Positions 16,686 to 55,907 of a DNA stretch of 64,000 nucleotides are shown here, in pieces; the stretch's first letter is position 1, and every line of letters starts with the position of its first letter. The notes under the pieces were generated by a model. That model saw only the letters and a program-made list of their open reading frames with translations, was not told the DNA's origin and searched no databases. The stretch spans positions 15,054,275-15,118,274 of the forward strand of contig NC_134032.1 in assembly GCF_964204645.1 (NCBI RefSeq), given 5' to 3'. The DNA comes from Tubulanus polymorphus (taxonomy: Eukaryota > Animalia > Nemertea). Made by a program: the position numbers and the translations under genes.

Positions 16686-16778
16686 AACCTTAACCTGTTG
16701 GTAACTATAAATAGAAATAAAGAAAATTACATTAAAACATGAAATTAATAAATTACTTAACTTTCCTCTTCTTTATAT

Positions 16779-30000: not shown

Positions 30001-33000
30001 GAGTGGTCCTGATGCTGAATGGAGAGTGTACGGGGGTGTACACAGTTACTGACACTGAATCCAGTAATTACTGACACTGATTCAGAGTGGGTCCTGATGC
30101 TGAATAGAGGATGAACAGGGGTGTCCCGGGTTCGAATCTAGTAATTACTGACACCGATCCAGAGTGGGATCACTATGAGGATAGAGGATCCAGTTAATGC
30201 GAATCCGTGTACAATCCGGCCGTACGATGCTGCCACTATGCTCATCGTTAGCGGGATTTTCATACACTAATGTTTGTCAACCCTGGCAATCGAAGTGCTG
30301 TCCAGTTATACTCCGTGATCCTAGCATGCCAGAGTAGACTTACGTTAGTTTATGAAAATCTCGCTTACAATAACCATAGCGGCAGCACCATACGCACCCA
30401 GTAATTACTGACAATGATGCTGAATACACGATGTACAGAAATCAGAAAAAAATAAAACCGAAAGTGATTTTGAGTTTTGAGGTCTTTTCCAAATTGCCTT
30501 CTTTGAATTTCCACAATGCAATTAACCTTGTTTGTATTTGTAAATACGTTATGAATGTTTTGTGTTGCTTTACTCATAGATTTACTTAAGATTCTGTTTG
30601 CTCTTGACTTGTTTTGTTTTTTTTGTTATTGATCAATAAATATATTCCATTTTGGTTGATAATTGGTTATCTTATATATATATAATCTATAATCTTATCT
30701 TGGAGTTGAGAAGACTGAAAATCCTGCATTGACTAGTCTGACTTAACATACCAACCCCCCCAGAATTGACACTGGTTAAAGTAACTGCGTGACTGATATG
30801 GCATCTCTTCTGAGAACAGTCTACATCTTGCAATAGATGATGTACAGGGGGTGTCCCAAGTTCGAACCCAGTTATTACTGATACCGATTCAGAGTGGGTC
30901 CTGATACTGAATAGAGGATGTACAGGGGTGTCCCGGGTTGGAACCCAGTTATTATTGTTCAGTGGTCCTGATGCTGATTAGAGGATGTACAGGGTGTCTC
31001 TGGTTCGAACCCAGTTATTGCTGATACCGATTTAGAGTGGTCCTGATGCTGAATAGATGATGTACAAGGGGTGTACACAGTTACTGACACTAAATCCAGT
31101 TATTACTGATACTGATTCAGAGTGGTCCTGATGCCGAATAGATGATGTACAGGGGGTGTACACAGTTACTGACACTAAATCCAGTAATTACTGATACTGA
31201 TTCAGAGTGGTCCTGATGCTGAATGGAGAGTGTACAGGGGGTGTACACAGTTACTGGCACTAAATCCAGTTATTACTGACACTAATTCAGAGTGGTCCTG
31301 ATGCCGAATAGATGATGTACAGGGGGTGTACACAATTACTGACACTAAATCCAGTAATTACTGATACTGATTCAGAGTGGTCCTGATGCCGAATAGATGA
31401 TGTACAGGGGGTGTACACAGTTACTGACACTAAATCCAGTAATTACTGATACTGATTCAGAGTGGTCCTGATGCTGAATGGAGAGTGTACAGGGGGTGTA
31501 CACAGTTACTGACACTGAATCCAGTAATTACTGACACTGATTCAGAGTGGGTCCTGATGCTGAATAGAGGATGTACAGGGGTGTCCCGGGTTCGAATCTA
31601 GTAATTACTGACACCGGTCCAGAGTGGGATCACTATGAGGATAGAGGATCCAGTTAATGCGAATCCGTGTACAATCCGGCCGTACGGTGCTGCCACTATG
31701 CTCATCGTTAGCGGGATTTTCATACACTAATGTTTGTCAACCCTGGCAATCGAAGTGCTATCCAGTTATACTCCGTGATCCTAGCATGCCAGAGTAGACT
31801 TACGTTAGTTTATGAAAATCTCGCTTACAATAACCATAGCGGCAGCACCATACGCACCCAGTAATTACTGACAATGATGCTGAATAGACGATGTACAGGG
31901 GCTAATATCAGAAAAAAATAAAACCGAAAGTGATTTTGAGTTTTGAGGTCTTTTCCAAATTGCCTTCTTTGAATTTCCACTATGCAATTAACCTTGTTTG
32001 TATTTGTAAATACGTTATGAATGTTTTGTGTTGCTTTACTCATAGATTTACTTAAGATTCTGTTTGCTCTTGACTTGTTTTGTTTTTTTGTTGTTATTGA
32101 TCAATAAATATATTCCATTTTGGTTGATAATTGGTTATCTTATATATATATAATCTATAATCTGATCTTGGAGTTGAGAAGACTGAAAATCCTGCATTGT
32201 CTAGTCTGACTTACATACCAACCCCCTCAGAATTGACACTGGTTAAAGTAACTGCGTGACTGATATGGCATCTTTTCAGTCTACATCTTGCAATAGACGA
32301 TGTACCGGGGGTGTCCCAAGTACGAACCCAGTTATTACTGACACTGATTCAGAGTGGGTCCTGATACTGAATAGATGATGTACAGGGGGTGTACACAGTT
32401 ACTGACACTGAATCCAGTAATTACTGATACTGATTCAGAGTGGTCTTGATGCCGAATAGAGGATGTACACGGTTATTACTGACACTGAATCCAGTAATTA
32501 CTGATACTGATTCAGAGTGGTCCTGATGCTGAATAGAGGATGTACACGGTTATTACTGACACTGAATCTAGTAATTACTGATACTGATTCAGAGTGGTCT
32601 TGATGCCGAATAGAGGATGTACACGGTTATTACTGACACTGAATCCAGTAATTACTGATACTGATTCAGAGTGGTCCTGATGCTGAATAGACGATGTACA
32701 CGGTTATTACTGACACTGAATCCAGTAATTACTGATACTGATTCAGAGTGGTCCTGATGCTGAATAGATGATGTACAAGGGGTGTACACAGTTACTGACA
32801 CTGAATCCAGTAATTACTGATACTGATTCAGAGTGGTCCTGATGCTGAATAGACGATGTACACGGTTATTACTGACACTGAATCCAGTAATTACTGATAC
32901 TGATTCAGAGTGGTCCTGATGCTGAATGGAGAGTGTACAGGGGGTGTACACAGTTACTGACACTGAATCCAGTAATTACTGACACTGATTCAGAGTGGGT

Positions 33001-36000
33001 CCTGATGCTGAATAGAGGATGTACAGGGGTGTCCCGGTTCGAATCTAGTAATTACTGACACCGGTCCAGAGTGGGATCACTATGAGGATAGAGGATCCAG
33101 TTAATGCGAATCCGTGTACAATCCGACCGTACGGTGCTGCCACTATGCTCATCGTTAGCGGGATTTTCATACACTAATGTTTGTCAACCCTGGCAATCGA
33201 AGTGCTGTCCAGTTATACTCCGTGATCCTAGCATGCCAGAGTAGACTTACGTTAGTTTATGAAAATCTCGCTTACAATAACCATAGCGGCAGCACCATAC
33301 GCACCCAGTAATTACTGACAATGATGCTCAATACACGATGTACAGGGGCTAATATCAGAAAAAAATAAAACCGAAAGTGATTTTGAGTTTTGAGGTCTTT
33401 TCCAAATTGCCTTCTTTGAATTTCCACTATGCAATTAACCTTGTTTGTATTTGTAAATACGTTATGAATGTTTTGTGTTGCTTTACTCATAGATTTACTT
33501 AAGATTCTGTTTGCTCTTGACTTGTTTTGTTTTTTTTTGTTATTGATCAATAAATATATTCCATTTTGGTTGATAATTGGTTATCTTATATATATATATA
33601 ATCTATAATCTTATCTCGGAGTTGAGAAGACTGAAAATCCTGCATTGACTAGTCTGACTTAACATACCAACCCCCTCAGAATTGACACTGGTTAAAGTAA
33701 CTGCGTGACTGATATGGCATCTCTTCTGAGAACAGTCTACATCTTGCAATAGACGATGTACAGGGGGTGTCCCAAGTTCGAACCCAGTTATTACTATACC
33801 GATTCAGAGTGGGTCCTGATACTGGATAGAGGATGTACAGGGGTGTCCCGGGTTGGAACCCAGTTATTACTGTTCAGTGGTCCTGATGCTGATTAGAGGA
33901 TGTACAGGGTGTCTCTGGTTCGAACCCAGTTATTGCTGATACCGATTCAGAGTGGGTCCTGATACTGAATAGATGATGTACAGGGGTGACCCGGGTTGGA
34001 ACCCAGTTATTACTGTTCAGTGGTCCTGATGCTGATTAGAGGATGTACAGGGTGTCTCTGGTTCGAACCCAGTTATTGCTGATACCGATTCAGAGTGGGT
34101 CCTGATACTGAATAGATGATGTACAAGGGGTGTACACAGTTACTGACACTAAATCCAGTAATTACTGATACTGATTCAGAGTGGTCCTGATGCCGAATAG
34201 ACAATGTACAAGGGGTGTTCACAGTTACTGACACTAAATCCAGTAATTACTGATACTGATTCAGAGTGGTCCTGATACTGAATAGATGATGTACAAGGGG
34301 TGTACACAGTTACTGACACTAAATCCAGTAATTACTGATACTGATTCAGAGTGGTCCTGATGCCGAATAGACAATGTACAAGGGGTGTTCACAGTTACTG
34401 ACACTAAATCCAGTAATTACTGATACTGATTCAGAGTGGTCCTGATGCCGAATAGACGATGTACAGGGGGTGTACACAGTTACTGACACTAAACCCAGTA
34501 ATTACTGATACTGATTCAGAGTGGGTCCTGATGCTGAATAGATGATGTACAGGGGGTGTACACAGTTACTGACACTAAATCCAGTAATTACTGATACTGA
34601 TTCAGAGTGGTCCTGATGCTGAATAGATGATGTACAGGGGGTGTACACAGTTACTGACACTAAACCCAGTAATTACTGATACTGATTCAGAGTGGTCCTG
34701 ATGCTGAATAGATGATGTACAGGGGGTGTACACAGTTACTGACACTGAATCCAGTAATTACTGACACTGATTCAGAGTGGGTCCTGATGCTGAATAGATG
34801 ATGTACAGGGGGTGTACACAGTTACTGACACTAAATCCAGTAATTACTGATACTGATTCAGAGTGGTCCTGATGCTGAATGGAGAGTGTACAGGTGGTGT
34901 ACACAGTTACTGACACTGAATCCAGTAATTACTGATACTGATTCAGAGTGGTCCTGATGCTGAATGGAGAGTGTACAGTTCGAATCTAGTAATTACTGAC
35001 ACCGATCCAGAGTGGGATCACTATGAGGATAGAGGATCCAGTTAATGCGAATCCGTGTACAATCCGGCCGTACGGTGCTGCCACTATGCTCATCGTTAGC
35101 GGGATTTTCATACACTAATGTTTGTCAACCCTGGCAATCGAAGCGCTGTCCAGTTATACTCCGTGATCCTAGCATGCCAGAGTAGACTTACGTTAGTTTA
35201 TGAAAATCTCGCTTACAATAACCATAGCGGCAGCACCATACGCACCCAGTAATTACTGACAATGATGCTGAATAGACGATGTACAGGGGCTAATATCAGA
35301 AAAAAATAAAACCGAAAGTGATTTTGAGTTTTGAGGTCTTTTCCAAATTGCCTTCTTTGAATTTCCACTATGCAATTAACCTTGTTTGTATTTGTAAATA
35401 CGTTATGAATGTTTTGTGTTGCTTTACTCATAGATTTACTTAAGATTCTGTTTGCTCTTGACTTGTTTTGTTTTTTTGTTGTTATTGATCAATAAATATA
35501 TTCCATTTTGGTTGATAATTGGTTATCTTATATATATATAATCTATAATCTGATCTTGGAGTTGAGAAGACTGAAAATCCTGCATTGTCTAGTCTGACTT
35601 ACATACCAACCCCCTCAGAATTGACACTGGTTAAAGTAACTGCGTGACTGATATGGCATCTTTTCAGTCTACATCTTGCAATAGACGATGTACCGGGGGT
35701 GTCCCAAGTACGAACCCAGTTATTACTGACACTGATTCAGAGTGGGTCCTGATACTGAATAGATGATGTACAGGGGGTGTACACAGTTACTGACACTGAA
35801 TCCAGTAATTACTGATACTGATTCAGAGTGGTCTTGATGCCGAATAGAGGATGTACACGGTTATTACTGACACTGAATCCAGTAATTACTGATACTGATT
35901 CAGAGTGGTCCTGATGCTGAATAGAGGATGTACACGGTTATTACTGACACTGAATCTAGTAATTACTGATACTGATTCAGAGTGGTCTTGATGCCGAATA

Positions 36001-39000
36001 GAGGATGTACACGGTTATTACTGACACTGAATCCAGTAATTACTGATACTGATTCAGAGTGGTCCTGATGCTGAATAGACGATGTACACGGTTATTACTG
36101 ACACTGAATCCAGTAATTACTGATACTGATTCAGAGTGGTCCTGATGCTGAATAGATGATGTACAAGGGGTGTACACAGTTACTGACACTGAATCCAGTA
36201 ATTACTGATACTGATTCAGAGTGGTCCTGATGCTGAATAGACGATGTACACGGTTATTACTGACACTGAATCCAGTAATTACTGATACTGATTCAGAGTG
36301 GTCCTGATGCTGAATGGAGAGTGTACAGGGGGTGTACACAGTTACTGACACTGAATCCAGTAATTACTGACACTGATTCAGAGTGGGTCCTGATGCTGAA
36401 TAGAGGATGTACAGGGGTGTCCCGGTTCGAATCTAGTAATTACTGACACCGGTCCAGAGTGGGATCACTATGAGGATAGAGGATCCAGTTAATGCGAATC
36501 CGTGTACAATCCGACCGTACGGTGCTGCCACTATGCCCATCGTTAGCGGGATTTTCATACACTAATGTTTGTCAACCCTGGCAATCGAAGTGCTGTCCAG
36601 TTATACTCCGTGATCCTAGCATGCCAGAGTAGACTTACGTTAGTTTATGAAAATCTCGCTTACAATAACCATAGCGGCAGCACCATACGCACCCAGTAAT
36701 TACTGACAATGATGCTCAATACACGATGTACAGGGGCTAATATCAGAAAAAAATAAAACCGATAGTGATTTTGAGTTTTGAGGTCTTTTCCAAATTGCCT
36801 TCTTTGAATTTCCACTATGCAATTAACCTTGTTTGTATTTGTAAATACGTTATGAATGTTTTGTGTTGCTTTACTCATAGATTTACTTAAGATTCTGTTT
36901 GCTCTTGACTTGTTTTGTTTTTTTTTGTTATTGATCAATAAATATATTCCATTTTGGTTGATAATTGGTTATCTTATATATATATATAATCTATAATCTT
37001 ATCTCGGAGTTGAGAAGACTGAAAATCCTGCATTGACTAGTCTGACTTAACATACCAACCCCCTCAGAATTGACACTGGTTAAAGTAACTGCGTGACTGA
37101 TATGGCATCTCTTCTGAGAACAGTCTACATCTTGCAATAGACGATGTACAGGGGGTGTCCCAAGTTCGAACCCAGTTATTACTATACCGATTCAGAGTGG
37201 GTCCTGATACTGGATAGAGGATGTACAGGGGTGTCCCGGGTTGGAACCCAGTTATTACTGTTCAGTGGTCCTGATGCTGATTAGAGGATGTACAGGGTGT
37301 CTCTGGTTCGAACCCAGTTATTGCTGATACCGATTCAGAGTGGGTCCTGATACTGAATAGATGATGTACAGGGGTGACCCGGGTTGGAACCCAGTTATTA
37401 CTGTTCAGTGGTCCTGATGCTGATTAGAGGATGTACAGGGTGTCTCTGGTTCGAACCCAGTTATTGCTGATACCGATTCAGAGTGGGTCCTGATACTGAA
37501 TAGATGATGTACAAGGGGTGTACACAGTTACTGACACTAAATCCAGTAATTACTGATACTGATTCAGAGTGGTCCTGATGCCGAATAGACAATGTACAAG
37601 GGGTGTTCACAGTTACTGACACTAAATCCAGTAATTACTGATACTGATTCAGAGTGGTCCTGATACTGAATAGATGATGTACAAGGGGTGTACACAGTTA
37701 CTGACACTAAATCCAGTAATTACTGATACTGATTCAGAGTGGTCCTGATGCCGAATAGACAATGTACAAGGGGTGTTCACAGTTACTGACACTAAATCCA
37801 GTAATTACTGATACTGATTCAGAGTGGTCCTGATGCCGAATAGACGATGTACAGGGGGTGTACACAGTTACTGACACTAAATCCAGTAATTACTGATACT
37901 GATTCAGAGTGGTCCTGATACTGAATAGATGATGTACAAGGGGTGTACACAGTTACTGACACTAAATCCAGTAATTACTGATACTGATTCAGAGTGGTCC
38001 TGATGCCGAATAGACAATGTACAAGGGGTGTTCACAGTTACTGACACTAAATCCAGTAATTACTGATACTGATTCAGAGTGGTCCTGATGCTGAATAGAT
38101 GATGTACAGGGGGTGTACACAGTTACTGACACTAAACCCAGTAATTACTGATACTGATTCAGAGTGGTCCTGATGCTGAATAGATGATGTACAAGGGGTG
38201 TACACAGTTACTGACACTGAATCCAGTAATTACTGATACTGATTCAGAGTGGTCCTGATGCTGAATAGACGATGTACACGGTTATTACTGACACTGAATC
38301 CAGTAATTACTGATACTGATTCAGAGTGGTCCTGATGCTGAATGGAGAGTGTACAGGGGGTGTACACAGTTACTGACACTGAATCCAGTAATTACTGACA
38401 CTGATTCAGAGTGGGTCCTGATGCTGAATAGAGGATGTACAGGGGTGTCCCGGTTCGAATCTAGTAATTACTGACACCGGTCCAGAGTGGGATCACTATG
38501 AGGAGAGAGGATCCAGTTAATGCGAATCCGTGTACAATCCGACCGTACGGTGCTGCCACTATGCACATCGTTAGCGGGATTTTCATACACTAATGTTTGT
38601 CAACCCTGGCAATCGAAGTGCTGTCCAGTTATACTCCGTGATCCTAGCATGCCAGAGTAGACTTACGTTAGTTTATGAAAATCTCGCTTACAATAACCAT
38701 AGCGGCAGCACCATACGCACCCAGTAATTACTGACAATGATGCTGAATAGACGATGTACACGGTTATTACTGACACTGAACCCAGTAATTACTTACAATG
38801 ATGCTGAATACACGATGTACAGAAGCTAATATCAGAAAAAAATAAAACCGAAAGTGATTTTGAGTTTTGAGGTCTTTTCCAAATTGCCTTCTTTGAATTT
38901 CCACAATGCAATTAACCTTGTTTGTATTTGTAAATACGTTATGAATGTTTTGTGTTGCTTTACTCATAGATTTACTTAAGATTCTGTTTGCTCTTGACTT

Positions 39001-40954
39001 GTTGTGTTTTTTTTTGTTATTGATCAATAAATATATTCCATTTTGGTTGATAATTGGTTATCTTATATATATATAATCTATAATCTTATCTTGGAGTTGA
39101 GAAGACTGAAAATCCTGCATTGACTAGTCTGACTTAACATACCAACCCCCTCAGAATTGACACTGGTTAAAGTAACTGCGTGACTGATATGGCATCTCTT
39201 CTGAGAACAGTCTACATCTTGCAATAGACGATGTACAGGGGTGTCCCAAGTTCGAACCCAGTTATTCCTGATACCGATTCAGAGTGGGTCCTGATACTGA
39301 ATAGAAGATGAACAGGGGTGTCCTGGGTTGGAACCCAGTTATTACTGTTCAGTGGTCCTGATGCTGATTAGAGGTTGTACAGGGTGTCTCTGGTTCGAAC
39401 CCAGTTATTGCTGATACCGATTCAGAGTGGGTCCTGATACTGAATAGAAGATGAACAGGGGTGTCCTGGGTTGGAACCCAGTTATTACTGTTCAGTGGTC
39501 CTGATGCTGATTAGAGGTTGTACAGGGTGTCTCTGGTTCGAACCCAGTTATTGCTGATACCGATTCAGAGTGGTCCTGATGCTGAATTGATGATGTACAG
39601 GGGGTGTACACAGTTACTGGCACTAAATCCAGTAATTACTGATACTGATTCAGAGTGGTCCTGATGCCGAATAGACGATGTACAGGGGGTTTACACTGTT
39701 ACTGGCACTAAATCCAGTTATTACTGACACTGAATCCAGTAATTACTGATACTGATTCAGAGTGGTCCTGATGCCGAATAGATGATGTACAGGGGGTGTA
39801 CACAGTTACTGACACTAAATCCAGTAATTACTGATACTGATTCAGAGTGGTCCTGATGCTGAATGGAGAGTGTACAGGGGGTGTACACAGTTACTGAAAC
39901 TGAATCCAGTAATTACTGACACTGATTCAGAGTGGGTCCTGATGCTGAATAGAGGATGTACAGGGGTGTCCCGGGTTCGAATCTAGTAATTACTGACACC
40001 GATCCAGAGTGGGATCACTATGAGGATAGAGGATCCAGTTAATGCGAATCCGTGTACAATCCGGCCGTACGGTGCTGCCACTATGCTCATCGTTAGCGGG
40101 ATTTTCATACACTAATGTTTGTCAACCCTGGCAATCGAAGTGCTGTCCAGTTATACTCCGTGATCCTAGCATGCCAGAGTAGACTTACGTTAGTTTATGA
40201 AAATCTCGCTTACAATAACCATAGCGGCAGCACCATACGCACCCAGTAATTACTGACAATGATGCTGAATAGACGATGTACACGGTTATTACTGACACTG
40301 AACCCAGTAATTACTGACACTGATTCAGAGTGGTCCTGATGCTGAATAGACGATGTACACGGTTATTACTGACACTGAACCCAGTAATTACTGACAATGA
40401 TGCTGAATAGACGATGTACAGGGGCTAATATCAGAAAAAAATAAAACCGAAAGTGATTTTGAGTTTTGAGGTCTTTTCCAAATTGCCTTCTTTGAATTTC
40501 CACTATGCAATTAACCTTGTTTGTATTTGTAAATACGTTATGAATGTTTTGTGTTGCTTTACTCATAGATTTACTTAAGATTCTGTTTGCTCTTGACTTG
40601 TTGTGTTTTTTTTTGTTATTGATCAATAAATATATTCCATTTTGGTTGATTATTGGTTATCTAATATATATATAATCTATAATCTTATCTTGGAGTTGAG
40701 AAGACTGAAAATCCTTCATTGTCTAGACTTAACATACTAACCCCCTCAGAATTGACACTGGTTAAAGTAACTGCGTGACTGATATGGCATCTCTTCAGTC
40801 TACATCTTGCAATAGACGATGTACAGGGGGTGTCTCAAATTCGAACCCAGTTATTACTGATACCAATTCAGAGTGGGTCCTGATACTGAATAGAGGATGT
40901 ACAGGGGTGTCCCGGGTTGGAACCCAGTTATTACTGTTCAGTGGTCCTGATGCT
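24074..40954. repeat. Composite satellite: 11 units of 1.06-2.03 kb, each = variable run of ~85-bp monomers + 174-bp hairpin element + constant AT-rich segment
   Basis: Marker gggatcactatgagga at 24581, 25791, 27273, 28333, 30166, 31626, 33073, 35014, 36461, 38489, 40011; monomer tactgacactgaatccagtaattactgatactgattcagagtggtcctgatgctgaatagatgatgtacagggggtgtacacagt. Confidence 0.97.
24636..24809. mobile_element. 174-bp fold-back (MITE-like) element; one per composite-satellite unit
   Basis: 68-bp arms cgtacggtgctgccactatg...ctggca / tgccag...catagcggcagcaccatacg, about 13 mismatches by eye. Confidence 0.8.
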
Positions 40955-43357: not shown

Positions 43358-43738
43358 TCTGTTTTGAAACTCATCTATATAAAACTGTTTCAAATAACAG
43401 ATAACTCTTTCGTCTTCGGTATTCGGTATTTCTAATTCATATCATTTTAAAGTGTAAATCATCATTTGGATAAAGTCGTCACATGACTGAAGTCATTTCT
43501 ATTTTTGAGTCCCAATTTATATTTTTAATACTAAATGTAAATCGTCATTTGTAAAAACAGATTCCTACGACTTTCACTCAAAGAAACGTTTTACTCTTTA
43601 CATTTGAATAAGTCTATTTTGCTGCAGTCGTCAAGAACCGTCAAAGATCTCACGTGTTTTACTGTGATAAATATTCCATTTTTCAGTTTTATAAATTTCA
43701 AACATTCACGAATAATCGATGAACTAATGAGCTACGTC

Positions 43739-44471
43739 ATGTACCGGAAGTTGTCATTGTTGACGTTGCTCGTCTGTTGCGCGACCGTTGTTGCCGGTGA
43801 CTACGAGAATCCGATTGCCGACGAAGATGTAGGTGACAAGAAAACCATTGTTGAACTTGTTTATTCGAACTCTGCCATGGTAACCGAAAATCCATAAACC
43901 ACAGGGGCTCGTGTCTGGGTACAGCCTGGATTTAACAGATTATCATGCTTGCAGTAACAGCACCTCTGATACGAGCCCTTGTGATATCAAACCACATTTT
44001 CTAATGAGTAGAATTGGTTAATTAGTAGGTTCCGAATTTTCTAATTAGTAAAAACGGTGAACTCGACGTTTTTGGATCATATCGCCCTCTACAGGTGGCA
44101 AATCGAATCAATCTAATTAAATCTAATTAATTATTTTAATACGAACTAATTATTTGTAAATACTTAATTTTCCTCTATTGTTGGAATAATAAGAGCCGAC
44201 CACGACAGCTGTCAGAACTATCGCTAGTGAGATTGCGATCCGATAGATGGCGAACTAGTCGATGAGTGATCTGTGTATCCGTTCTTGTTTCAGTCTCAGT
44301 TGAGTGAATGTGATTTGAAGAACTACGTGTGCCGTACATTGATGAGAATATCGAGAGATGAAACAGATTCAGAAACGAGCGAAGATCAAGAGAATTTTAA
44401 ATGTGAAATGTGTTCCTCGATTTGGGATGAATCCGACGGCTATTCCTTAACGTGGACCTCCTACGAAAGAC
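43739..44471 (+). CDS. Partial gene (2 exons seen) for a secreted Cys-rich protein, resembling Argos/giant-lens and U-scoloptoxin(11)-like proteins
   Basis: Exon 43739-43828 MYRKLSLLTLLVCCATVVAGDYENPIADED|gtaggt (signal peptide; alternative in-frame ATG at 43727); exon 44294-44471 tttcag|SQLSECDLKNYVCRTLMRIS...FKCEMCSSIWDESDGYSLTWTSYER|gtaagt; phases match. The family call rests on recalled motif C..WD..DG.S.TW. No clear third exon, so it may be a pseudogene. Confidence 0.6.
43900..43983. mobile_element. Tiny TIR element in intron of the secreted-protein gene
   Basis: cacaggggctcgtgtc ... gatacgagcccttgtg inverted ends. Confidence 0.5.
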
Positions 44472-44812: not shown

Positions 44813-45374
44813 CAGTGACCAATTGCCCAAACATTGATTAAACAATGGATTCTGGAGTCCATGGTCAAAGTTTAGCGGTGGACAGTTCATTAAGTGACAA
44901 TTGAAATTGAATTGTTACTATTATTGTCGACCCGTTAATTCTAAAACAATGTTTGAACAACTGGCTCCAAAACGACAAAAATATATATCGAACAAAACGA
45001 CTGTTATTGTTATATTCAAATTCTGTAGTCAAGTAAATATGATTCTTTTCATTTGTTAGTCTTTGCTTATACAATATAACAATATACAAATACTTGAAAA
45101 TACTGTGAAAATAATCTATACACACTATATGGTGCTCTGGCAGTCGAGGAATTTCAAAATTCAAACTATATTTTCGTTTATATCAGAGTTCTTGAAATTC
45201 ATTACACTTCATAAAGTTACATTTATACAACACAACAGCCACTGTAGATTCCTGACCTCTACTACAATGTAGTTATCTTCTGAAGAGTTTCTGATATCTG
45301 TGACAAAGTCGTCATCTTATAGAGAGTTTCTGTAACAGTGTAGTCATCTTCTTGTAGCATTCCTGAATCTGAGC

Positions 45375-48300
45375 TTAGTCCATTGTTCCATTATCATCTA
45401 TATATCATAAAGAAAAGATAAAAAATAAATTCGAGCGTTGAGTTCATAATATAAGCGCGTAAATCCAGGAAAGGTTGCTTATGACAACCTAGGTTAGTAT
45501 CCGCCCCTGAAACCCAACCTTACTTTTCCCTATACTGAAAACTTTTGAAAGGTTGAGTCCGACCCACACCATCAACCTGTCTCACTGAACCCATGGCTTA
45601 CATACATGTAACCGGCAATGTTTATGGGGGACCTCACTTTCTCTTTTGGTACTACATTATTTTTGTGTCGTGCCCTACGCATCTACTAACCTAATTGTGG
45701 TCTTATGCCATCTGCAACAACGTAGGTATCTTCTGGAGGGTTTCTGATATCTGGGACAACGTAGGTATCTTCTGGGGGGTTTCTGACACCTGCGACAACG
45801 ACGTAATCATCTTCTGAAGAGTTTCTTGCATCTGGAACAATGTAGGTATCTTCAGGAGTGTTCCTGACACCTGCGACAACGACGTAGTCATCTTCTGGAG
45901 GATTCCTGACACCTGCGACAACGACGTAGTCATCTTCTGTTGAGTTTCTTGCATCTGGAACAATGTAGGTATCTTCAGGGGGATTCCTGACACCTGCGAC
46001 AACGTAGGTATCTTCTGTAGAGTACCTAACATCTGGGCCAACGTAGTCATCTTCTGGAGAGATCCTGTCGTCAGCTGAAGTAGTTGTTGGCTGAAAATAA
46101 ATCGGTAAACAATTAGGCCTAATAATATATTCGCAAATAAAAAAAATTGAAAACAATAGAAATGTATTATTTATATTGACAAACCTTAAGTGCAACAATG
46201 TAGGTATCTTCTGGAGGGTTCCTGACACCTGTGAAAATGTAGGTATCTTCTGGAGGGTTCATGTCATCTGGGCCAACGTAGTCATCTTCAGGGGGATTCC
46301 TGACACCTGCGACGATGTAGGTATCTTCTGTAGGGTTAGAGACACCTGCAACAACATAGGTATCTTCTGGAGTGTTCCTGATATTTGGGACAACGACGTA
46401 GTCATCTTCTGCAGAGTTTCTGACACCTGCGACAACGTATGTATCTTCTGAAGAGTTTCTTGCATCTGGAACAATGTAGGTATCTTCAGGAGTGTTCCTG
46501 ACACCCGCGACAACGACATAATCATCTTCTGGAGGATTCCTGACACCTGCGACAATGTAGGTATCTTCTGGAGGGTTCATGACATCTGGGCCAACGTAGT
46601 CATCTTCTAGAGGGTTCCGGACACCTGCGACAATGTAGGTATCTTCTGGAGGGTTCCTGACACCCGCGACAAGGTTGTCATCTACGTCATCATCTGAGTT
46701 CCATACATCTACATCATCATCTGTAGAGTTCCATGCATCTACGTCATCATCTGTAGCGTTCCTTACATCTACGTCATCATCTGTAACGTTCCTGACACCT
46801 GCGACAACGACATCTACAATATCTACATCATCGTAGATTTCACCGTCATCTATGTCTTCGTAGATACCGTCCTGTGTTGTGTAGATCCTACCACCAACTC
46901 CAGAAGACGAAGGCTGAAAATAAATCGGTTAAAAAATTTACAAAATATTCACAAATAAAATAAAATTTAAAAAACAATGTGAATGTATTTATATTAACGA
47001 ACCTGATAGCACATTGCCCCTGGATCGGTCGTGTTGTTACCTAAACAATAATAGAATGTTAGATGAAATATTACATGTATTTATTCTTATTCAAAGAACT
47101 TCCTGTTCCCAAAATCAAGTCAGATTATATTCTGGAGCACTCAGTTTCATTGTTATCATTTCTAATTTGACGTAAATCCCCCAAACACGCTTTCACTCAA
47201 CCCCGTTTAATAGTAAAATGATAAATAACAAACCAGTATTTCTGTTTCTCACGTTCCTCCGCTGTCTGATCAACACGGCGATGGCTATAGCAGCCACTAT
47301 TACTAGAATCAGGAAACCGATCCCGAAAACAACTGTCAAATAACTGATTCTATCTGTATCCGTATCTGTATCTGTATCTGTATCTGAAATACAGATTATG
47401 AAACTCATCTATATCAAACAGGTTCAAATTACAGACTTAAGTTTACATATTTAAATTCTACTATTTTCACCTTTAACCCGCCATAGAAGTTTAAACCCAG
47501 CATTACTTCTAGAGTTGTCTGATGTAAACTGTATTGTAATATTTCCAGTGTGGGATCGATTACCTGGAGCAGCCGACCCGCAATACAGATTATAGCCTGG
47601 TGAAGAAATAAATAATGATAAAACTTTATGAATCATAAAAATCATTCACGTTGTGAAGAGTGTTAAGATTTTTACCGGTTTCACTTTTTATCGTCAACGC
47701 GTCCCAGCAACGACCTTTACTTGTCTGTATATGAAAATTTGACTCAAACGATATTTCAACCATCTGCAAAAATATAAATGTAATTCAAAAGTGATCAATT
47801 GTATTGTCAGCAGAATGTAGGACCCGTTTCAGTAGTTCAGTTTCAACTTTAACCCGGAGTTATCAGTTGAACTAAACCCCGGAATAAAGTTAAAACTGAT
47901 TCTAATCCCAATGAACCTCGTGCAGAAAATCTGACGACTTCATTTTTTCCTAAGACCAACATTTCACAATTATTATTCATATATTTACCGTGTTTTCAGG
48001 TGCTTGGATTAACCAGCTACAGTCGATATTGTCATTATAGCTGTTCGGGTAGTTAGGGCTGGATATGACGCCTGATCTACCATTCTGTATTATAGGTGTT
48101 TTACTACATGAATCAACTACAAATAAATATTGAATTGAATTGTTTTATATGTGATTTACTGATTCCATGATCAACTTCTCATTATGCTCAGCTACCTTTC
48201 ACAAATTTCCAACAGAGTTCAAACCCTTTATGGTAGGTACTAGACCTGTCTGATGTAAACCGGATGTCTACCTCACTGGTATAGTTACGTGTAGGTGGCG

Positions 48301-51300
48301 CTGTATTGCCGCAATATACATCACGATCTGCATTAAAGATAAACACACAAATTAATGATACATTTTTAGCTGGATTTGAAAACACAAATCTATCAGTAGC
48401 AGCCACACCGCAATATTCAACACTCCCTGATGATGAAATAAATCTGATAAAATTTTATGAATCATAAAAATCATTTACGTTGTGAATAGTGTTTAGATTT
48501 TTACCGGTTTCACTTTTTATCGTCAACGCGTCAAAGCAATTATCACCAGTTTTGGCCCCAATACCGAAATTCGAGTCAAATGATATTTCAACAATCTGTA
48601 AAAATATAAGAATTAAGATTAATAATTGTTGATTATAATTCAAAGTGAACCGTCGTATTGTTTGCAGAGTGCAGGACCCGTTTGTATGGATCAGTTTTAA
48701 CTTTAATCCAGAGTTATCAGTTCAAAACTAAACCTCGGGTTAAAGTTAAAACTGAATTCAGCCGCCATTGAGCTCGAACTAGTGCAGTAAACCCGACATC
48801 ATTTTTCTCATAGACCAAATATTTACCGTGTTTCCAGGTACTGCAATTAACCATCTACAGTCCAGCCTGCGGTAGTACTTGTTCGGGTAGTTAGGGCTGG
48901 ATAGGACGCCTGATCTACCATTCTGTATTATAGGTGTTTTACTACATGAATCAACTACAAATAAATATTGAATTGAATTGTTTTATATGTGATTTACTGA
49001 TTCCATGATAAACTTCTCATTATGCTCAGCTACCTTTCACAAATTTCCAATGGAGTTCAAACCCTTTATGGTAGGTACTAGACCTGTCTGATGTAAACTG
49101 GATGGCTACCTCACCGGAATAGTAGCGTGTAGGTGGCGCTGTATTGCCACAATATACATCACCATTTTCTGCTGTAAAAATAAACACACAAATCAATGAT
49201 AGATTTTCTAGCTGGATTTGAAAATATACATCAGGAGCCACCAAATAAATCTGATAAAATTTTATAAATCATAAAATTCATTCACGTTGTGAATAGTGTT
49301 TAGATTTTTACCGGTTTTACTTTTTATCGTCAACGCGTCCCGGCAACTATCACCAGTTTTGGCCCCAATACTGAAGTTCGAGTCAAATGATATTTCAACA
49401 ATCTGTAAAAATATAAGAATTAAGATTAATAATTGTTGATTATAATTCAAAGTGAACCGTCGTATTGTTTGCAGAGTGCAGGACCCGTTTGTATAGATCA
49501 GTTTTAACTTTAATCCAGAGTTATCAGTTCAAAACTAAACCTCGGGTTAAAGTTAAAACTGAATTCAGCCGCCATTGAGCTCGAACTAGTGCAGTAAACC
49601 CGACATCATTTTCTCATAGACCAAATATTTACCGTGTTTCCAGGTACTGCAATTAACCATCTACAGTCCAGCCTGCGGTAGTACTTGTTCGGGTAGTTAG
49701 GGCTGGATAGGACGCCTGATCTACCATTCTGTATTATAGGTGTTTTACTACATGAATCAACTACAAATAAATATTGAATTGAATTGTTTTATATGTAATT
49801 TACTGATTCTATGATCAACTTCTCACTAATGACCTACCTTTCACAAACCACCACAGCAGTTTAAACCCACTGTAGCTACCATAGCTGCCTGATGTAAACC
49901 GGATGATTACACGACCGGTATAGTTACGTGTAGGTGGCGCTGTATTGCCACAATATACATTCACTGTAAGAATAAACACACAAATCAATGATATTTTTTA
50001 GCTGGATTGGAAAACACAAATCTATCAGTAGCAGCCACACCGCAATATTCAATACTCCCTGATGATGAAATAAATCTGATAAAACTTTATGAATCATAAA
50101 AATCATTAACGTTGTGAATTTTTACCGGTTTCACTTTGTATCGTCAACACGTCCCAGCACCGACCGTAACTTTTGGGCTCTATGCTAAAATTCGAGTCGA
50201 ATGATAATTCAACCACCTTAAAAACAATATAAGAATTTAGAATTTAAATATCATTCAAAAAGTGAGCAATCGTAAAATATAGGACCCGTTCATATAGATC
50301 AGTTTAAACTTAAACCCGGAGTTACGTATCAGTTCAGAACTTAACCCCGGATTAAAGTTAAAACTGTTTTGACCAAATATTTACCGTATTTTCAGGAGCT
50401 ACAATCGCCCAGCTACAGTTCAGTCCGTGGTAGTAGTTGCCCGGGTAGTTAGGGCTGGATAGGACGCCTGATCTACCATTCTGTATTATAGGTGTTTTAC
50501 TACATGAATCAACTACAAATAAATATTGAATTGAATTGTTTTATATGTAATTTACTGATTCTATGATCAACTACTCATTATGAGCTACCTTTCAAAAACC
50601 GCCAGAACAGTTTAAACCCTTTGTAGCTATTAGAGCTGTCTGATTTAAACTTGATGATTACATCTCCGGAATAGTAACGTGTAGGTGGCGCTGTACTGCC
50701 ACAATATACATCACCATTTCCTGCTGTAAAAATAAACACACAAATCAATGATATATTTTTAGCTGGATCTGAAATCAATTAACTGAATAAATCAAATATA
50801 TTCCTTAATTTATTCATTTGACATCGAGTCTGAAATAGAATGATTCGATTCTTACTGGAATAGTCTGTGTATATTATGTATAATTTGTCACGGCAATTAT
50901 GAGTATCACTGGTCGTATTGGAATCCACTTCGAAGATAGGATCAAACGATATTTCTACTTTCTGGGAATAGAAATAATCATGATTCATTATTATTCAAAT
51001 GCGTTCAAACCCTCTATTACTTGTAACACGGTTATTTAAGGGCTACAGGTAGAATTTAGGAACAAACATGATTCAACTTTTTGAAATAAAAATAATTGAA
51101 TTTATCAATGATCAAATATTTTCACACCATTCTGACTGTCATTAGGGGTTACCCGTTATGGGGTCATCCTTATTAACGAGATGATGTATTTTACCGAGAT
51201 GAACCGAGATCAACCGAGATGAAATTAAATATAACATATTTATTTATTCCTTATCGATTTTAACACTTGAAATCATGTTATATCAGTAATAAATACCTTC

Positions 51301-54300
51301 TAGAGTCATATTTTACATATATTCTACATATTTTACATATTTTTTTATTTAAAAAAATTTTGACTCAAAAAACGTAAACTCGGTTAGCAATAAAATTTCA
51401 TTGAATTTGATTGATCGACGATCTCATCTCGGTAAAGTTAAAAGTTATTTTTCCAAAAATATCCGACAAAATATGTAAAATATGAACCCAGCAGGCATTT
51501 ATTACTGATATTATAATATGATTTCAATGGTTAAAATCGATATGGAATAAATAAATATGTTATATTTAATTTCATCTCGGTTCATCTCGGTAAAATACAT
51601 CATCTCGGTAATAAGGATGACCGCCCGTTATGTGATGTTATAGTTAAACAGTTAAGCAGCCGATTTGGTGCTGGATCCAAGCTACGTCCTACACTAGTCC
51701 AAATTGTACTGACAAAAACATTTTTGATAATATTTCTAGTTTTCCTAACCGCGTATAAATATATTTTACCATTTCCTGTGTTTTATATTTACCATGTTTT
51801 GCGGTGTTCGAATCAACCATCTACAGTGCAGATTGTCGCCATAGTTACCCGGGTAGTTAGGACTGGTTATTACGCCTGTTCTACCGATCTGTACTCTAGA
51901 CTGCCTGCTACATGTCGAGTCAACTACAAATATTAAATTTATTATTATATATGTTATTTACTGATTTCATGATAAACTTCTCATTATGTACTATGGTACC
52001 TTTCAGTATCGTCCAGTGGAGTTTAAACCCGGTATAAGTTCGACTGCTGCCTGTGTTAAACATGATTTTTACAGAACCAGAATAGTAACGTGTAGGTGGC
52101 GCTGTGCTGCCACGATAGCTAGCAATATCTATTTTCAAAATAAAATACACAAATCAAAATTTTTCTAGGTGGATCTGAAAATAATAAACTAAATGAATCG
52201 TAGATATTTTTCGCATATTTTTAAAAATAGAATTATTCCATTCTTACATATCCCGTTAACGAATATGTTTAAAGGGCTACCACTATCCACTCTGAATCTA
52301 GGATCAAACGATATTTCAACTCCCTGAAATTAAGCAATTATAATTGATTATTTTTCAAATCCTAGTACACTTCTCCAAATTATACAGACAAAACATGTTT
52401 CATAAGCGGCAAATATTTTTCACTCCTAAAAGCAACAATTTCCTGCGTTTTCCTATAATTACCGTGTTTTTAGGTGTTTTTATCAACCATACACAGTTCA
52501 GATGGTGATTATAGTTGCCCGGAAAGTTAGGACTGGATATGACGCCTGATGCACCATTCTGTACTCTAGGTGTCTCACTACAAGTCGAATCAACTACAAA
52601 TAAATATTGGTTTTATTGTTTTATATGTGATGAATGAATTTATTTTCTCAAATGTTTGAACATGGGTATAATAATAATTTTGTTTGATTACTGCTGCATA
52701 TGAATTGAAATTTTACTTGTTTGAGGAGGACATCCCCGAGCCGTAAGAGCTGTACCTGAAGGGGATGCCCTCTAAGATTTACTGATTCCATGATCAACTT
52801 CTCATTATGAGCTACCTTTCAAAAACCGCCAAACGAGTTTAAACCCTTTGTAGCTGACAGAGTCGTCTGATGTAAACCGGATGATTACACGACCGGAATA
52901 GACACGTGTAAGTGGCGCTATACTGCCGCAATATACATCACCATTTTCTGCTGTAAATATAAACACACAAATTAATATTTTCTAGCAGGATTTTTAAAAA
53001 CACACATTTCCCTGATGAAAAAATAAATCTGATAAAATTTTATGAATCACAAAAATCATTGTGAAGAGTGTTTAGATTTTTACCAGTTTTACTTTTTATC
53101 GTCAACGCGTCAGGGCAACCACTGTACGTTCTAAATTCTACATGAAATTTCGAGTCGAATGATATTTCAACCATCTGCAAAAAATATATGAATATTCAGC
53201 ATTTAATTATAGTTTAACAGTGAACATGTATGTATTGTTTACAGGATGTAGGACCCGATATATACAGAGTGTCTTAGAAAATGTGATACACAATTCATTA
53301 ACTATTACACGTAATTTTAGCTATTTTCTTGGGGAGGGGGTAAGGTTGGTAGACCTGGATGTTTGCAAGAGGATCGATTGGCCCTAGAGTCAAACCTAAA
53401 ACTACAGATTGTTCCATTGTGTACGTTTATTGTTAAATGACCAGCTGCTGCCTGTTGAGATATTGATCACTAAATCACTGGATTTCACTTGTTGGGTATT
53501 CTACTGTGTAAAAACTGAGGTATTCAAAACATATCTAGCAGGAATCGAAAACTTTAGTCTTCGGAAAGTAACAGATTTTGAGAAATACTGAATCTGATGA
53601 GTCAAAATTCTACGATAAAACGTCGACCTCAAGTGTGAAAACAGTTACCATATTGAACAAATCTGGAGCAGCTTAATTTGTAAGGAGGACCAACAATTTT
53701 ATTCAGGAGAAATTTGTCTTAGTTAATTTATGTCATGTCTCAAATCATCATGTCATATGGCAGCAGATCATTTATCAATACACGCACACAATGCATGCAT
53801 TAATCCTTATTTCTTATATTGGTTCAACTCCAACCATTTTTTAAGCTACGGTAACACATTTTTGAGACGCCCTGTATATCAGTTTTAACTTTACCCTAGA
53901 GTTATCAATTGAACTAAACCTCGGGTTAAAGTTAAAACTGAATTCAGCCGCCATTGAGCTCGAACTAGTGCAGTAAACCCGACATCATTTTTCTCATAGA
54001 CCAAATATTTACCGTGTTTCCAGGTACTGCAATTAACCATCTACAGTCCAGCCTGCGGTAGTAGCTGTTCGGATGGTTAGGGCTGGTTATGACGCCTGAT
54101 CTACCATTCTGTATTATAGGTGTTTTACTACATGAATCAACTACAAATAAATATTGAATTGAATTGTTTTATATGTGATTTACTGAATCCATGATAAACT
54201 TCTCATTATGCTCAGCTACCTTTCACAAATTTCCAATGGAGTCTAAACCCTTTGTAGCTACTAGACCTGTCTGATGTAAACTGGATGACTACACGACCGG

Positions 54301-55907
54301 AATAGTAGCGTGTAGGTGGCGCTGTTTTGCCACAATATACATCTGCCGTAAAAATAAACACACAAATCAATGATAGATTTTTAGCTGGATTTGAAATCTG
54401 TAAACTGAAGAAATCGCAGATATTTCTTCATTTATTCATTTCACATCGAGTTTAAGATTAAATTGTTCGATTCTTACAGTTTGGGTCATTATATATGGAT
54501 ACTTTGTCACGGCAATGACCACTTGCCGTATTGAGTTCCAATTCGAAAATAGGATCAAACGATATTCTTGACACCTAAAAATAGAATCAGTCACGTGGTT
54601 ATCTAAGGGTTTCCCGTAGAATTTAGGATCAAATCAGATTCAACTTTGAACTATGCAACTCTGAAATAAAATTAATTTGATTGTTTCATTATTTCTTAAA
54701 TATTTTCACTACATTCTAACTGGTAGTAATGATTAAGGGTTACCCCTATTGATAATGCATAACGTGATGTAATAGTTAATCAGTTCAGCGCCCGATTTGG
54801 TGCTGGATCCAAGTTCCGTTCTACACTTGTCCAAATATTACTGACAAAAACATTTTTTATTATATTTCTAGTTTTTCTAACCGCGAATATATTTCACAAT
54901 TTCCTGTGTTTTATATTTACCATGTTTTGAGGTATATCAATCTCCCAAAAACATTCCAGATTGTCGCCATAATTGCCAGGGTAGTTAGGACTGGTTATGA
55001 CGCCAGAAGTTCCGTTCTGTTTTCTATACCGCCAGCTACAACTCGAGTCGATGTTATCTGCCCAAACTGTATAGAAAAATACCCGTATCTATAAACTTAT
55101 AAAGCGGTAGTTAGTAGGACTAACTCAACTGATAATGAATTTAGTTAGCCTTCGGGTCGAGGTTAATACCAGTCTATAAAAAAGAGAACTGGTCATCAGT
55201 TACCACACCACACTGATCACCAGGTCACCACAGCTGACTAGTCACCAGTCACTGGACTTGTCACCAGGTCACCACAGCTGACTAGTCATCAGTCGGCACC
55301 ACAGCTAAATGGTCAGACACTGACCGGACAAACTACATCAAACTTTATGGTCTAGTGGTTAGCGTGATCGCCTGGCACAGTGGAGGTCCCGGGTTCGAGG
55401 CTGAGGATAAACTCCTCCCGCTAGGTGCTGATGATAAGTTCCCGCGATAGAAATATCATTTGATTTTGATTAATTAAATATGTTATTAATCTTTTAAATT
55501 CTATATATTGTGGTTTTAAAACCTACTGTCTAATTTGACCGGTGCTATACTACCAATAGGTAGTTGCTGTTTTGAGAAAATTTATTCCTTTTTTTTTAAA
55601 ATAAACAACTGTCCTTGAAACGAGTTCCGGAACAACGCGTCATACTGGCCGTTTAGTGAGGTAATAAAGTGACCTTTTGAGACCATTAGTTTAGAGAGTT
55701 CCTCAGATTGGCACCCGCACCGCGGCATTGATCAAACAGTTCTAACCTATGTGACGGCACTAATCTCAATAATTTAACTCTAAAATTCTTAATCAACAAA
55801 TTTAATCAGTATTAAGTGATATAAATATTATTTGTTCGCTTACCTTGAGAATTCTCGACGAATAAAATTACAGCGACCACAAACAAACTCTTCATCATCA
55901 ACTCCAT
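45375..55907 (-). CDS. 30-exon gene for a type I transmembrane receptor: signal peptide + 8 CUB domains + TM + Tyr-repeat cytoplasmic tail (~1408 aa)
   Basis: Hand-assembled exons, all GT-AG and phase-compatible, no internal stop: 55907-55844 (MELMMKSLFVVAVILFVENSQ); 55066-54921; 54574-54478; 54342-54220; 54140-54013; 53174-53084; 52950-52816; 52593-52463; 52323-52248; 52128-52000; 51923-51793; 50961-50856; 50723-50589; 50512-50385; 50216-50126; 49963-49838; 49760-49633; 49402-49312; 49171-49034; 48954-48827; 48595-48505; 48327-48196; 48116-47989; 47763-47676; 47596-47471; 47383-47234 (TM); 47040-47003; 46913-46185; 46090-45691; 45397-45375 (DDNGTMD*). Sum 4227 nt. CUB signature [16 protein letters not shown].W.I / V.ISF..F / C.D.L.I / YCG...P / V.I.FTSD.S....GF.L.W recurs eight times. 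The last exon is least certain; read-through would end PQLG* at 45686. Confidence 0.92.
45691..46913 (-). CDS. Two cytoplasmic exons with 13/14-aa tyrosine repeats (39/42-nt coding minisatellite)
   Basis: 46913-46185 (243 codons; IYEDI, IYDDV, DDDVD repeats, 12 ED[T/D]Y) and 46090-45691 (9 ED[T/D]Y); consensus NPPED[T/D]Y[I/V]V(V)AGVR; frame open throughout. Confidence 0.9.
47234..47383 (-). CDS. Transmembrane exon with (DT)n stalk and basic stop-transfer
   Basis: DTDTDTDTDTDRISY-LTVVFGIGFLILVIVAAIAIAVLI-RQRRNVRNRNT; 150 nt, phase 1-1, atttcag| and |gtttgt. Confidence 0.92.
47471..48116 (-). CDS. CUB domain 8 (membrane-proximal)
   Basis: [43 protein letters not shown] / MVEISFESNFHIQTSKGRCWDALTIKSET / GYNLYCGSAAPGNRSHTGNITIQFTSDNSRSNAGFKLLWRVK. 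Confidence 0.9.
48196..48954 (-). CDS. CUB domain 7 (recent duplicate of CUB6)
   Basis: A exon identical to CUB6; B IVEISFDSNFGIGAKTGDNCFDALTIKSET; C DRDVYCGNTAPPTRNYTSEVDIRFTSDRSSTYHKGFELCWKFVK. Confidence 0.9.
48690..48756. repeat. ~65-bp intronic hairpin carried in A-B introns of CUB2,5,6,7,8
   Basis: tcagttttaactttaa...ttaaagttaaaactga; copies near 47837, 48690, 49498, 50298, 53878. Confidence 0.75.
49034..49760 (-). CDS. CUB domain 6 (exons A/B/C)
   Basis: [43 protein letters not shown] / IVEISFDSNFSIGAKTGDSCRDALTIKSKT / AENGDVYCGNTAPPTRYYSGEVAIQFTSDRSSTYHKGFELHWKFVK. Confidence 0.9.
49838..50512 (-). CDS. CUB domain 5 (exons A/B/C)
   Basis: [43 protein letters not shown] / VVELSFDSNFSIEPKSYGRCWDVLTIQSET / VNVYCGNTAPPTRNYTGRVIIRFTSGSYGSYSGFKLLWWFVK. 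Confidence 0.9.
50589..51923 (-). CDS. CUB domain 4 (exons A/B/C)
   Basis: [44 protein letters not shown] / KVEISFDPIFEVDSNTTSDTHNCRDKLYIIYTDYS / TGNGDVYCGSTAPPTRYYSGDVIIKFKSDSSNSYKGFKLFWRFLK. Confidence 0.9.
51161..51623. mobile_element. Non-autonomous Mutator-like element (463 bp) in CUB4 intron
   Basis: ~130-bp TIRs starting gggtcatccttatta; exact 9-bp TSD cccgttatg at 51152-51160 and 51624-51632; absent from the paralogous CUB1 intron. Confidence 0.88.
52000..52593 (-). CDS. CUB domain 3 (divergent, lacks second disulfide)
   Basis: [44 protein letters not shown] / GVEISFDPRFRVDSGSPLNIFVNGI / YIASYRGSTAPPTRYYSGSVKIMFNTGSSRTYTGFKLHWTILK. Confidence 0.85.
52816..54140 (-). CDS. CUB domain 2 (exons A/B/C)
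   Basis: [43 protein letters not shown] / MVEISFDSKFHVEFRTYSGCPDALTIKSKT / AENGDVYCGSIAPLTRVYSGRVIIRFTSDDSVSYKGFKLVWRFLK. Confidence 0.9.
53265..53874. mobile_element. Tc1/mariner-type MITE (610 bp) in CUB2 intron
   Basis: ta|cagagtgtcttagaaaatgtg ... cacatttttgagacgccctg|ta; paralogous introns lack it. Confidence 0.8.
54220..55066 (-). CDS. CUB domain 1 (exons A/B/C)
   Basis: [41 protein letters not shown] / VSRISFDPIFELELNTASGHCRDKVSIYNDPN / YVYCGKTAPPTRYYSGRVVIQFTSDRSSSYKGFRLHWKFVK. Confidence 0.9.
55348..55400 (+). other. tRNA-derived fragment (SINE head or pseudo-tRNA)
   Basis: A box tggtctagtgg and B box ggttcgag at tRNA spacing; acceptor stem missing. Confidence 0.6.
55844..55907 (-). 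CDS. Exon 1 of CUB receptor: signal peptide
   Basis: ATG at 55907; MELMMKSLFVVAVILFVENSQ then G|gtaagc (phase 1), joining exon 2 to give ...NSQVWA-DNIDSSC, a plausible cleavage site. Confidence 0.85.

Follow-up and report, generated by a model that had tools for sequence, protein, structure and literature searches.

The gene lying between positions 55907 and 45375 on the minus strand of the window (the whole stretch of 64,000 nucleotides of Tubulanus polymorphus DNA that was analysed) encodes a signal peptide, eight CUB domains, one transmembrane (TM) segment and a long tail that is rich in tyrosine. The gene belongs to a family whose CUB units are mosaic and carry positive selection on surface positions, whereas the core of the tail is constant. 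With a probability of about 0.5, we read the 8-CUB protein as a non-catalytic type I recognition receptor that belongs to a family restricted to Tubulanus and whose tail would act as a phosphotyrosine scaffold.

The gene was rebuilt by hand from six-frame translations and splice-site lists. It consists of 30 exons with GT-AG borders at every intron, and the joined reading frame of 4,227 nt encodes 1,408 amino acids without a single internal stop. Each CUB is spread over three exons, and intron phases 1/0/1 recur in every CUB. The sequence-only reading had proposed an intact 30-exon frame for a signal peptide, eight CUBs, a TM and a tail with more than 20 tyrosines, and the rebuilt gene (26 tail tyrosines) bears this out. 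It had also held that the exons, at 76-150 nt, are hidden from the ORF track. This is true of the CUB and TM exons, but the two main tail exons are 729 and 400 nt long and are visible as ORFs. The features of the gene are as follows.

55844..55907, minus strand: exon 1, signal peptide (21 aa), DNA-identical in four paralogs
54220..55066, minus strand: CUB1, the distal domain (exons 55066-54921, 54574-54478, 54342-54220), strongly diverged among paralogs
52816..54140, minus strand: CUB2 (exons 54140-54013, 53174-53084, 52950-52816)
52000..52593, minus strand: CUB3 (exons 52593-52463, 52323-52248, 52128-52000), without the second disulfide and without acidic calcium-type residues
50589..51923, minus strand: CUB4 (exons 51923-51793, 50961-50856, 50723-50589), exon 4C matching PF00431
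49838..50512, minus strand: CUB5 (exons 50512-50385, 50216-50126, 49963-49838)
49034..49760, minus strand: CUB6 (exons 49760-49633, 49402-49312, 49171-49034)
48196..48954, minus strand: CUB7 (exons 48954-48827, 48595-48505, 48327-48196), 90% amino acid identity to CUB6
47471..48116, minus strand: CUB8, membrane-proximal type (exons 48116-47989, 47763-47676, 47596-47471)
47234..47383, minus strand: TM exon with a short (DT)n linker, a helix of ~25 residues (~47342-47268) and a basic stop-transfer stretch
47003..47040, minus strand: 38-nt micro-exon, start of the tail module, homologous to the FN3-class genes together with ~46 nt of its upstream intron
46185..46913, minus strand: tail exon T1 with the YEDI-x5-YDDV core (46862-46824), an acidic DDDVDV spacer and 39/42-nt tyrosine repeats
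45691..46090, minus strand: tail exon T2 with more ED[T/D]Y[V/I] repeats
45375..45397, minus strand: last coding exon (23 nt) with the stop, identical in four paralogs and present in RefSeq models

The same model is already public. RefSeq protein XP_074656410.1 of T. polymorphus, named 'cubilin-like', is identical to the hand-built 1,408-aa model letter by letter, and its locus matches the window with zero mismatches across 28,626 nt, which places base 1 of the window at OZ123233.1:15,054,275. The gene had been called unrecognised, a description that has to be withdrawn, as RefSeq holds the exact model; the name alone is uninformative. The entry is automatically named and is silent on the TM, the tyrosine tail, the family and selection. 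The gene is thus real, intact and already modelled in RefSeq; no paper describing a CUB tyrosine-tail family was found in the literature searched, in which it is undescribed as a family.

No splice joints were found in the three read runs that hold the locus; these runs cover introns and behave as DNA. A fourth run, presumed to be RNA, gave no contig there. In the RefSeq models of the paralogs the exons are arranged in the same way, with the 38-nt micro-exon in place, and four of five have the 23-nt last exon. RefSeq models are commonly built using transcript alignments, and the shared plan may be taken as support for splicing of the 8-CUB gene, indirect at best. The 23-nt exon had been doubted since one read contig skips it; it was retained because it is identical in four paralogs and present in the RefSeq models.

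Several other elements were seen in the window. Positions 1-15118 consist of tandem units of ~2.77 kb with 98-99% identity and rearranged partial copies, with almost no ORFs. They are followed by a 31-bp satellite of ~74 copies (16779-19101) and by arrays of 77-85-bp repeats in duplicated blocks of ~3.4 kb with a recurring short minus-strand ORF (24000-40700). On the plus strand, a signal-peptide-like exon with a splice donor (43730-43882) lies in a duplicated segment. It has no Pfam match, is frameshifted in three paralogous copies and is probably a relic. Within the 8-CUB gene, the intron after exon 4A contains a MITE-like element of ~460 bp with long, near-perfect inverted arms (51162-51622), and intron 1 contains tRNA-like A and B boxes recognised by eye on the plus strand (55345-55440), possibly the head of a SINE. 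ARAGORN reported no tRNA there, and neither a tRNA (ARAGORN) nor an Rfam match was found in the window.

Searches were run exon by exon. The joined frame was used only for the frame check, motif counts and unit alignment, and additional searches and the fold prediction used paralog proteins from the database. In the exon-wise Pfam scan, seven of the eight CUB exons scanned first matched PF00431 singly, as did exon 4C; the short B exons gave no PF00431 match on their own, and the Pfam CDCP1 CUB models stayed below threshold. The first CUB of a paralog was predicted to adopt the CUB beta-sandwich fold (mean pLDDT 83), and Foldseek matched this model to neuropilin, C1r/C1s and MASP with a TM-score of ~0.7; TSG-6 and cubilin (3kq4) were also among the fold matches. 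The CUB assignment was thus confirmed by profile for single exons and by the predicted fold of the paralog domain. Within the 8-CUB gene, the units are 46-90% identical to each other, and CUB3 lacks the second cysteine pair in the unit alignment. Judged by alignment position only, the acidic triad of loops 5 and 9 (calcium type) is complete in CUB1, CUB2 and CUB4 and in 11 of 31 units across the family. CUB7 carries a fifth cysteine (exon 48196-48327, minus strand) that is probably unpaired and sits at an outward position of the last strand; it is a possible dimerisation site.

Every exon of the ectodomain encodes CUB sequence. EGF, LCCL and FV/FVIII domains were looked for in the ectodomain and are absent, as are Ig features in the protein; FV/FVIII plus MAM or LDLa, the extra domains of neuropilin, NETO and LEV-10, were found neither in the 8-CUB gene nor in the CUB-class paralogs. 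No ZP module precedes the TM, and only ~12 residues lie between CUB8 and the TM. Only one segment of the protein is hydrophobic (19-residue windows starting at 973-987), and RQRRNVRNRN comes after it. According to the positive-inside rule, these residues place the tail in the cytoplasm.

The tail of 406 residues is acidic and of low complexity. It contains the YEDI-x5-YDDV core, an acidic spacer and 21 repeat units, 13-14 residues long, with ED[T/D]Y[V/I] at the centre; 21 of the 26 tyrosines lie in these repeats. Seven tyrosines are in a YxxP and seven in a Yxx[VIL] context, most repeats reading YxxA/G/P. A motif scan of the tail found no canonical ITAM (YxxI/L-x6-9-YxxL/I), ITIM, ITSM or NPxY; the nearest approach is YEDI-x5-YDDV. 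Acidic residues ahead of tyrosine would suit Src- and Syk-type kinases, and YEDI resembles an Src SH2 ligand, YDDV a Nck ligand and YxxP a Crk ligand. Across the proteins examined, 113 of 115 repeat units keep the tyrosine, YEDI is present in nine out of nine, and the tails carry 14-39 tyrosines. Tail-length variants with a readable size in the read contigs are in frame (-126, -66, +81). Directly past the stop codon (45250-45370, minus strand), decayed copies of the tail repeat with frame breaks were observed, which are a sign of earlier tail expansion and loss.

To place the tail, T1 was searched exhaustively against 1.84 billion cluster representatives. Five strong matches with 56-83% identity were obtained, all of them RefSeq proteins of T. 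polymorphus, and region searches with paralogs added three further proteins of this species, including XP_074656410.1. No tail relative outside T. polymorphus was found among the 1.84 billion representatives. A word-indexed search returned nothing, its length window excluding the full-length relatives. Pfam LCAT and CSD2 matches on the tail, as well as resilin-like and other low-identity matches, look compositional, and look-alikes from a feature atlas (vaccinia A36, SCIMP and the MUC1 tail) scored <0.8 and serve as leads only.

The tail also occurs on a second kind of ectodomain. Three tandem copies are located on OZ123227.1 (~4.36-4.39 Mb; locus positions 5213-5951, 14554-15292 and 25232-25968), in genes whose ectodomain combines EGF-like, F5/8-type (fucolectin-like) and FN3 repeats with a membrane-proximal FN3 of the RPTP type. 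RefSeq calls these FN3-class genes 'Lar-like', 'PTP delta-like' or 'uncharacterized', and no phosphatase motifs were found downstream of their TMs within the fetched loci. Tails of the two classes are 42% identical across 202 amino acids. At the DNA level, the homology starts ~46 nt 5′ of the micro-exon and extends across the intron that follows it as far as T1, with 69% identity; the TM exons of the two classes show no DNA match. This boundary is the footprint of exon shuffling at a phase-1 intron, and either of the two classes compared may have been the donor.

A search for paralogues, as had been suggested, revealed a lineage-restricted multigene family. Chromosome OZ123233.1 carries at least six CUB-class genes, that is, the 8-CUB gene and at least five paralogs, with two CUBs at 11.92 Mb, three at 14.87 Mb, eight at 15.10 Mb, five at 15.56 Mb, six at 15.86 Mb and seven at 16.28 Mb. 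Five of them lie between 14.87 and 16.29 Mb of the 16.68-Mb chromosome. The 2-CUB paralog is located antisense inside a metabotropic-glutamate-receptor-like gene (fetched locus 10001-13683), and the 5-CUB paralog lies inside the span of an annotated EF-hand gene (fetched locus 10001-18322). The 6- and 7-CUB genes are contained in segmental duplicates that are collinear with the window over at least 20 kb. The 6-CUB locus, collinear over 28 kb, was first taken for an allele of the 8-CUB gene; this was rejected in favour of a segmental-duplicate paralog because the window turned out to match another part of this chromosome exactly. By sequence comparison, the paralogs with two to eight CUBs evidently arose by duplication of the three-exon unit and of segments of at least 20 kb. 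When allelic polymorphism was looked for, the read contigs proved to mix paralogs. TM and tail variants in them, among these two TM-exon variants at 47244, have no counterpart among the fetched loci, so there must be additional paralogs or divergent alleles. The 8-CUB family is clustered and lineage-restricted, and its ectodomain is diversifying.

This diversification is strong in the distal domain. Among the three closest paralogs, the CUB1 exons differ by 11-16%, the surrounding introns by 2.5-3.7% and the exons for signal peptide, TM and tail core by 1-2% (Fisher p 4e-7 to 3e-19); against the more distant, older 5-CUB paralog, the excess of CUB1 exons over introns is weak (p 0.004-0.27). 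The CUB units are mosaic. The further apart two sites lie, the more often they are incompatible (0.18 rising to 0.42; permutation p = 5e-4), and the closest relative switches from exon to exon. The three closest genes differ at 68 CUB1 sites. At 52 of these, the minority state is private, i.e. not present in other sampled units, and copying from known donors does not explain them. All 12 of the indels listed for the read contigs, out of 25, are non-coding, although exons make up half of the stretch.

Selection was assessed with our own implementations of the tests, applied to recombining paralogs from one assembly. Pooled over whole CUBs, pN/pS is ~0.7 and thus below 1, and synonymous divergence in the CUB1 exons is also raised (0.07-0.17). 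In a codon site model with a separate tree for each exon, comparison of M2a with M1a gave 2dL = 63, with ~31% of sites at omega ~2.4. Since recombination inflates this test, 12 neutral-plus-purifying simulations with a new tree every ~9 codons were run. The grid version of the statistic reached 87 for the real data and 0.9-29 in the simulations. Sites under selection occupy loops L3, L5 and L9 as well as every other, outward-facing position of strands b4, b9 and b10. Selection of the antibody-CDR type on the loops alone is not supported, as L3, L5 and L9 taken as a block have a pN/pS of 0.67-0.86. Strands b4, b9 and b6 form one sheet in the standard CUB topology, and outward residues of this sheet in CUB1 show a pN/pS of 3.2 (95% 1.9-5.1), compared to 0.16 for core positions; because this face was picked after the variation had been seen, it is a lead and no independent test. 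The sequence-only reading had inferred a diversifying ectodomain. This is supported by the positive selection on the ectodomain beside a constant signal peptide, TM and tail core; strong purifying selection throughout the ectodomain, which would have spoken against it, was not found.

Comparison with known receptors puts these features into context. DCBLD1 and DCBLD2 (ESDN) are type I non-catalytic receptors with eight and seven intracellular YxxP motifs that are phosphorylated by Src-family kinases and Abl and bind CRK/CRKL (PMC6029619). They contradict the earlier statement that no known CUB receptor has a multi-tyrosine tail. The 8-CUB protein may be likened to them as a CUB-containing receptor with multiple YxxP motifs, here seven among 26 tyrosines. 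Unlike it, DCBLD1/2 combine one CUB with LCCL and FV/FVIII domains, are conserved vertebrate genes and do not carry their motifs in a tandem minisatellite; the exhaustive T1 search of the 1.84 billion representatives found no tail homology to them. CDCP1 likewise has a CUB-only ectodomain, a TM and a tail phosphorylated by Src, and it appeared as a feature look-alike below the 0.9 threshold. However, it is a single conserved gene with three divergent CUBs and five tyrosines. Cubilin shares the long tandem CUB array, but it has EGF repeats, 27 CUBs and no TM and needs amnionless, whereas in the 8-CUB protein the eight CUBs directly follow the signal peptide, EGF is absent, and TM and tail are its own.

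In terms of evolution, the closest parallels are found elsewhere. Hydractinia Alr (10.1101/2022.03.04.482883) and Botryllus FcoR (PMC12582321) are clustered, lineage-restricted and diversifying single-pass receptors with tyrosine motifs, as is the 8-CUB family. Alr ectodomains are Ig/FN3-like, and CUB is unmentioned in the Alr paper (10.1101/2022.03.04.482883). Canonical ITAM, hemITAM or ITIM motifs occur in both families, whose allelic polymorphism has been demonstrated, whereas the 8-CUB tail has no canonical ITAM or ITIM; FcoR also has non-canonical tyrosine motifs of unknown function (PMC12582321). The Alr-like design logic that had been proposed for the gene therefore holds for the evolutionary pattern (clustered, lineage-restricted, diversifying) but not for the signalling motifs, as canonical ITAM, ITIM and ITSM are lacking. 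Biomphalaria resistance loci encode TM1 receptors (PTC1/GRC, PTC2 and LG5R, the last being fucolectin-EGF proteins with or without PTP domains; PMC13712769), which also form spiralian clusters of variable single-pass receptors and for which no CUB arrays or tandem tyrosine tails are described. By description, the FN3-class genes with the shared tail are similar to LG5R subgroup 1B, a fucolectin-EGF type without phosphatase (PMC13712769). By analogy, the best reading is that the 8-CUB receptor would work like DCBLD1/2 and evolve like Alr, FcoR or the Biomphalaria resistance clusters, being a member of none of these.

A constant tail combined with diversifying CUBs is the pattern expected of a receptor for variable foreign or self molecules, and we infer ligand, cell type, phosphorylation and partners of the 8-CUB receptor as well as an immune or allorecognition role. 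The CUB array would use paralog-specific surfaces to bind a variable ligand outside the cell, which most likely comes from microbes or parasites, and the number of CUBs would set avidity. Clustering might then lead Src/Abl/Syk-type kinases to phosphorylate the tail tyrosines in their acidic context. The YEDI/YDDV core and the 21 ED[T/D]Y[V/I] repeats, with seven tyrosines as YxxP, would recruit SH2 adaptors multivalently, similar to DCBLD1/2 and p130Cas, and the number of repeats would set the strength of recruitment. As the same tail is present on the fucolectin-EGF-FN3 ectodomain, signals from two types of sensor would converge on one output. Tubulanus is solitary, which makes tissue-fusion allorecognition unlikely.

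Positive selection alone cannot distinguish an immune function from gamete recognition. A doubtful alternative is a receptor for conspecifics, placed on the gamete surface or serving self/non-self recognition: its CUBs would bind a rapidly evolving ligand on sperm, on the egg coat or of the allo type, and its tail would signal compatibility. In its tandem repeats, concerted evolution and fast distal unit, the gene is reminiscent of abalone VERL and sea-urchin EBR1, and the omega ~2.4 class and the b4/b9/b6 face would fit as well. EBR1 of sea urchin contains CUB repeats, and NeZPL2 of the nemertean Kulikovia is an oocyte-expressed protein with a signal peptide, eight CUBs, a TM, a furin site and a ZP module (PMC11673550). 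Compared by description, NeZPL2 and the 8-CUB protein share signal peptide, eight CUBs and TM, but the latter has no ZP module and leaves only the short CUB8-TM spacer for one. Moreover, a 26-tyrosine tail in common with a fucolectin-type receptor suits somatic signalling better, and the divergence lies between several paralogs present side by side and not at a single locus.

It seems unlikely, too, that the protein is a self-contained, cubilin-like endocytic or scavenger receptor that captures diverse proteins with its CUBs and whose tail tyrosines serve above all as YxxPhi sorting signals. Cubilin, to which the 3kq4 fold match points, captures its ligands with CUB arrays, and the seven Yxx[VIL] motifs and the acidic calcium-type triad in 11 of 31 units are consistent with such a role. 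On the other hand, most repeats are YxxA/G/P and not YxxPhi, NPxY is absent, and 26 tyrosines are far more than sorting calls for; a changing ligand would still have to be assumed to account for positive selection and rapid turnover. Least probable is a mostly neutral origin at an unstable chromosome end full of repeats, where an ordinary CUB membrane protein has acquired conversion-made mosaicism and a coding minisatellite without signalling use as its tail: the many tandem and segmental repeats of the window, the demonstrated gene conversion, the raised synonymous divergence in CUB1 exons and the decayed units past the stop agree with it, but the selection statistic lies above all 12 recombination nulls, most CUB1 differences are private, the listed indels avoid exons, and the repeat tyrosine and the core motif are kept, the latter across two unrelated gene classes.

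Our data thus favour a family of recognition receptors. The 8-CUB family is a diversifying, non-catalytic tyrosine-tail receptor family built from CUB arrays, with a tail module common to unrelated ectodomains. More tentatively, and at rather less than even odds, Tubulanus may possess an undescribed modular recognition system, in which one exon-shuffled phosphotyrosine-array tail of variable length serves two sensor classes that are unrelated to each other. One would be the CUB arrays, diversified through positive selection and the shuffling of units, and the other the RPTP-type fucolectin-EGF-FN3 proteins that carry the tail in place of the phosphatase. Such a system would provide a germline immune repertoire with signalling independent of ITAM and ITIM. 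A coding minisatellite would then act as a portable signalling module for unrelated ectodomains, including RPTP-like ones without phosphatase, and the names 'cubilin-like', 'neuropilin-1-like' and 'Lar-like' conceal one common tail. No paper on variable recognition receptors in nemerteans was found in the literature searched. Such receptors have been invented repeatedly across invertebrate lineages, and the T. polymorphus family offers a testable case of this that uses CUB domains in place of Ig, lectin or LRR domains and in which the selected surface sites are mapped.
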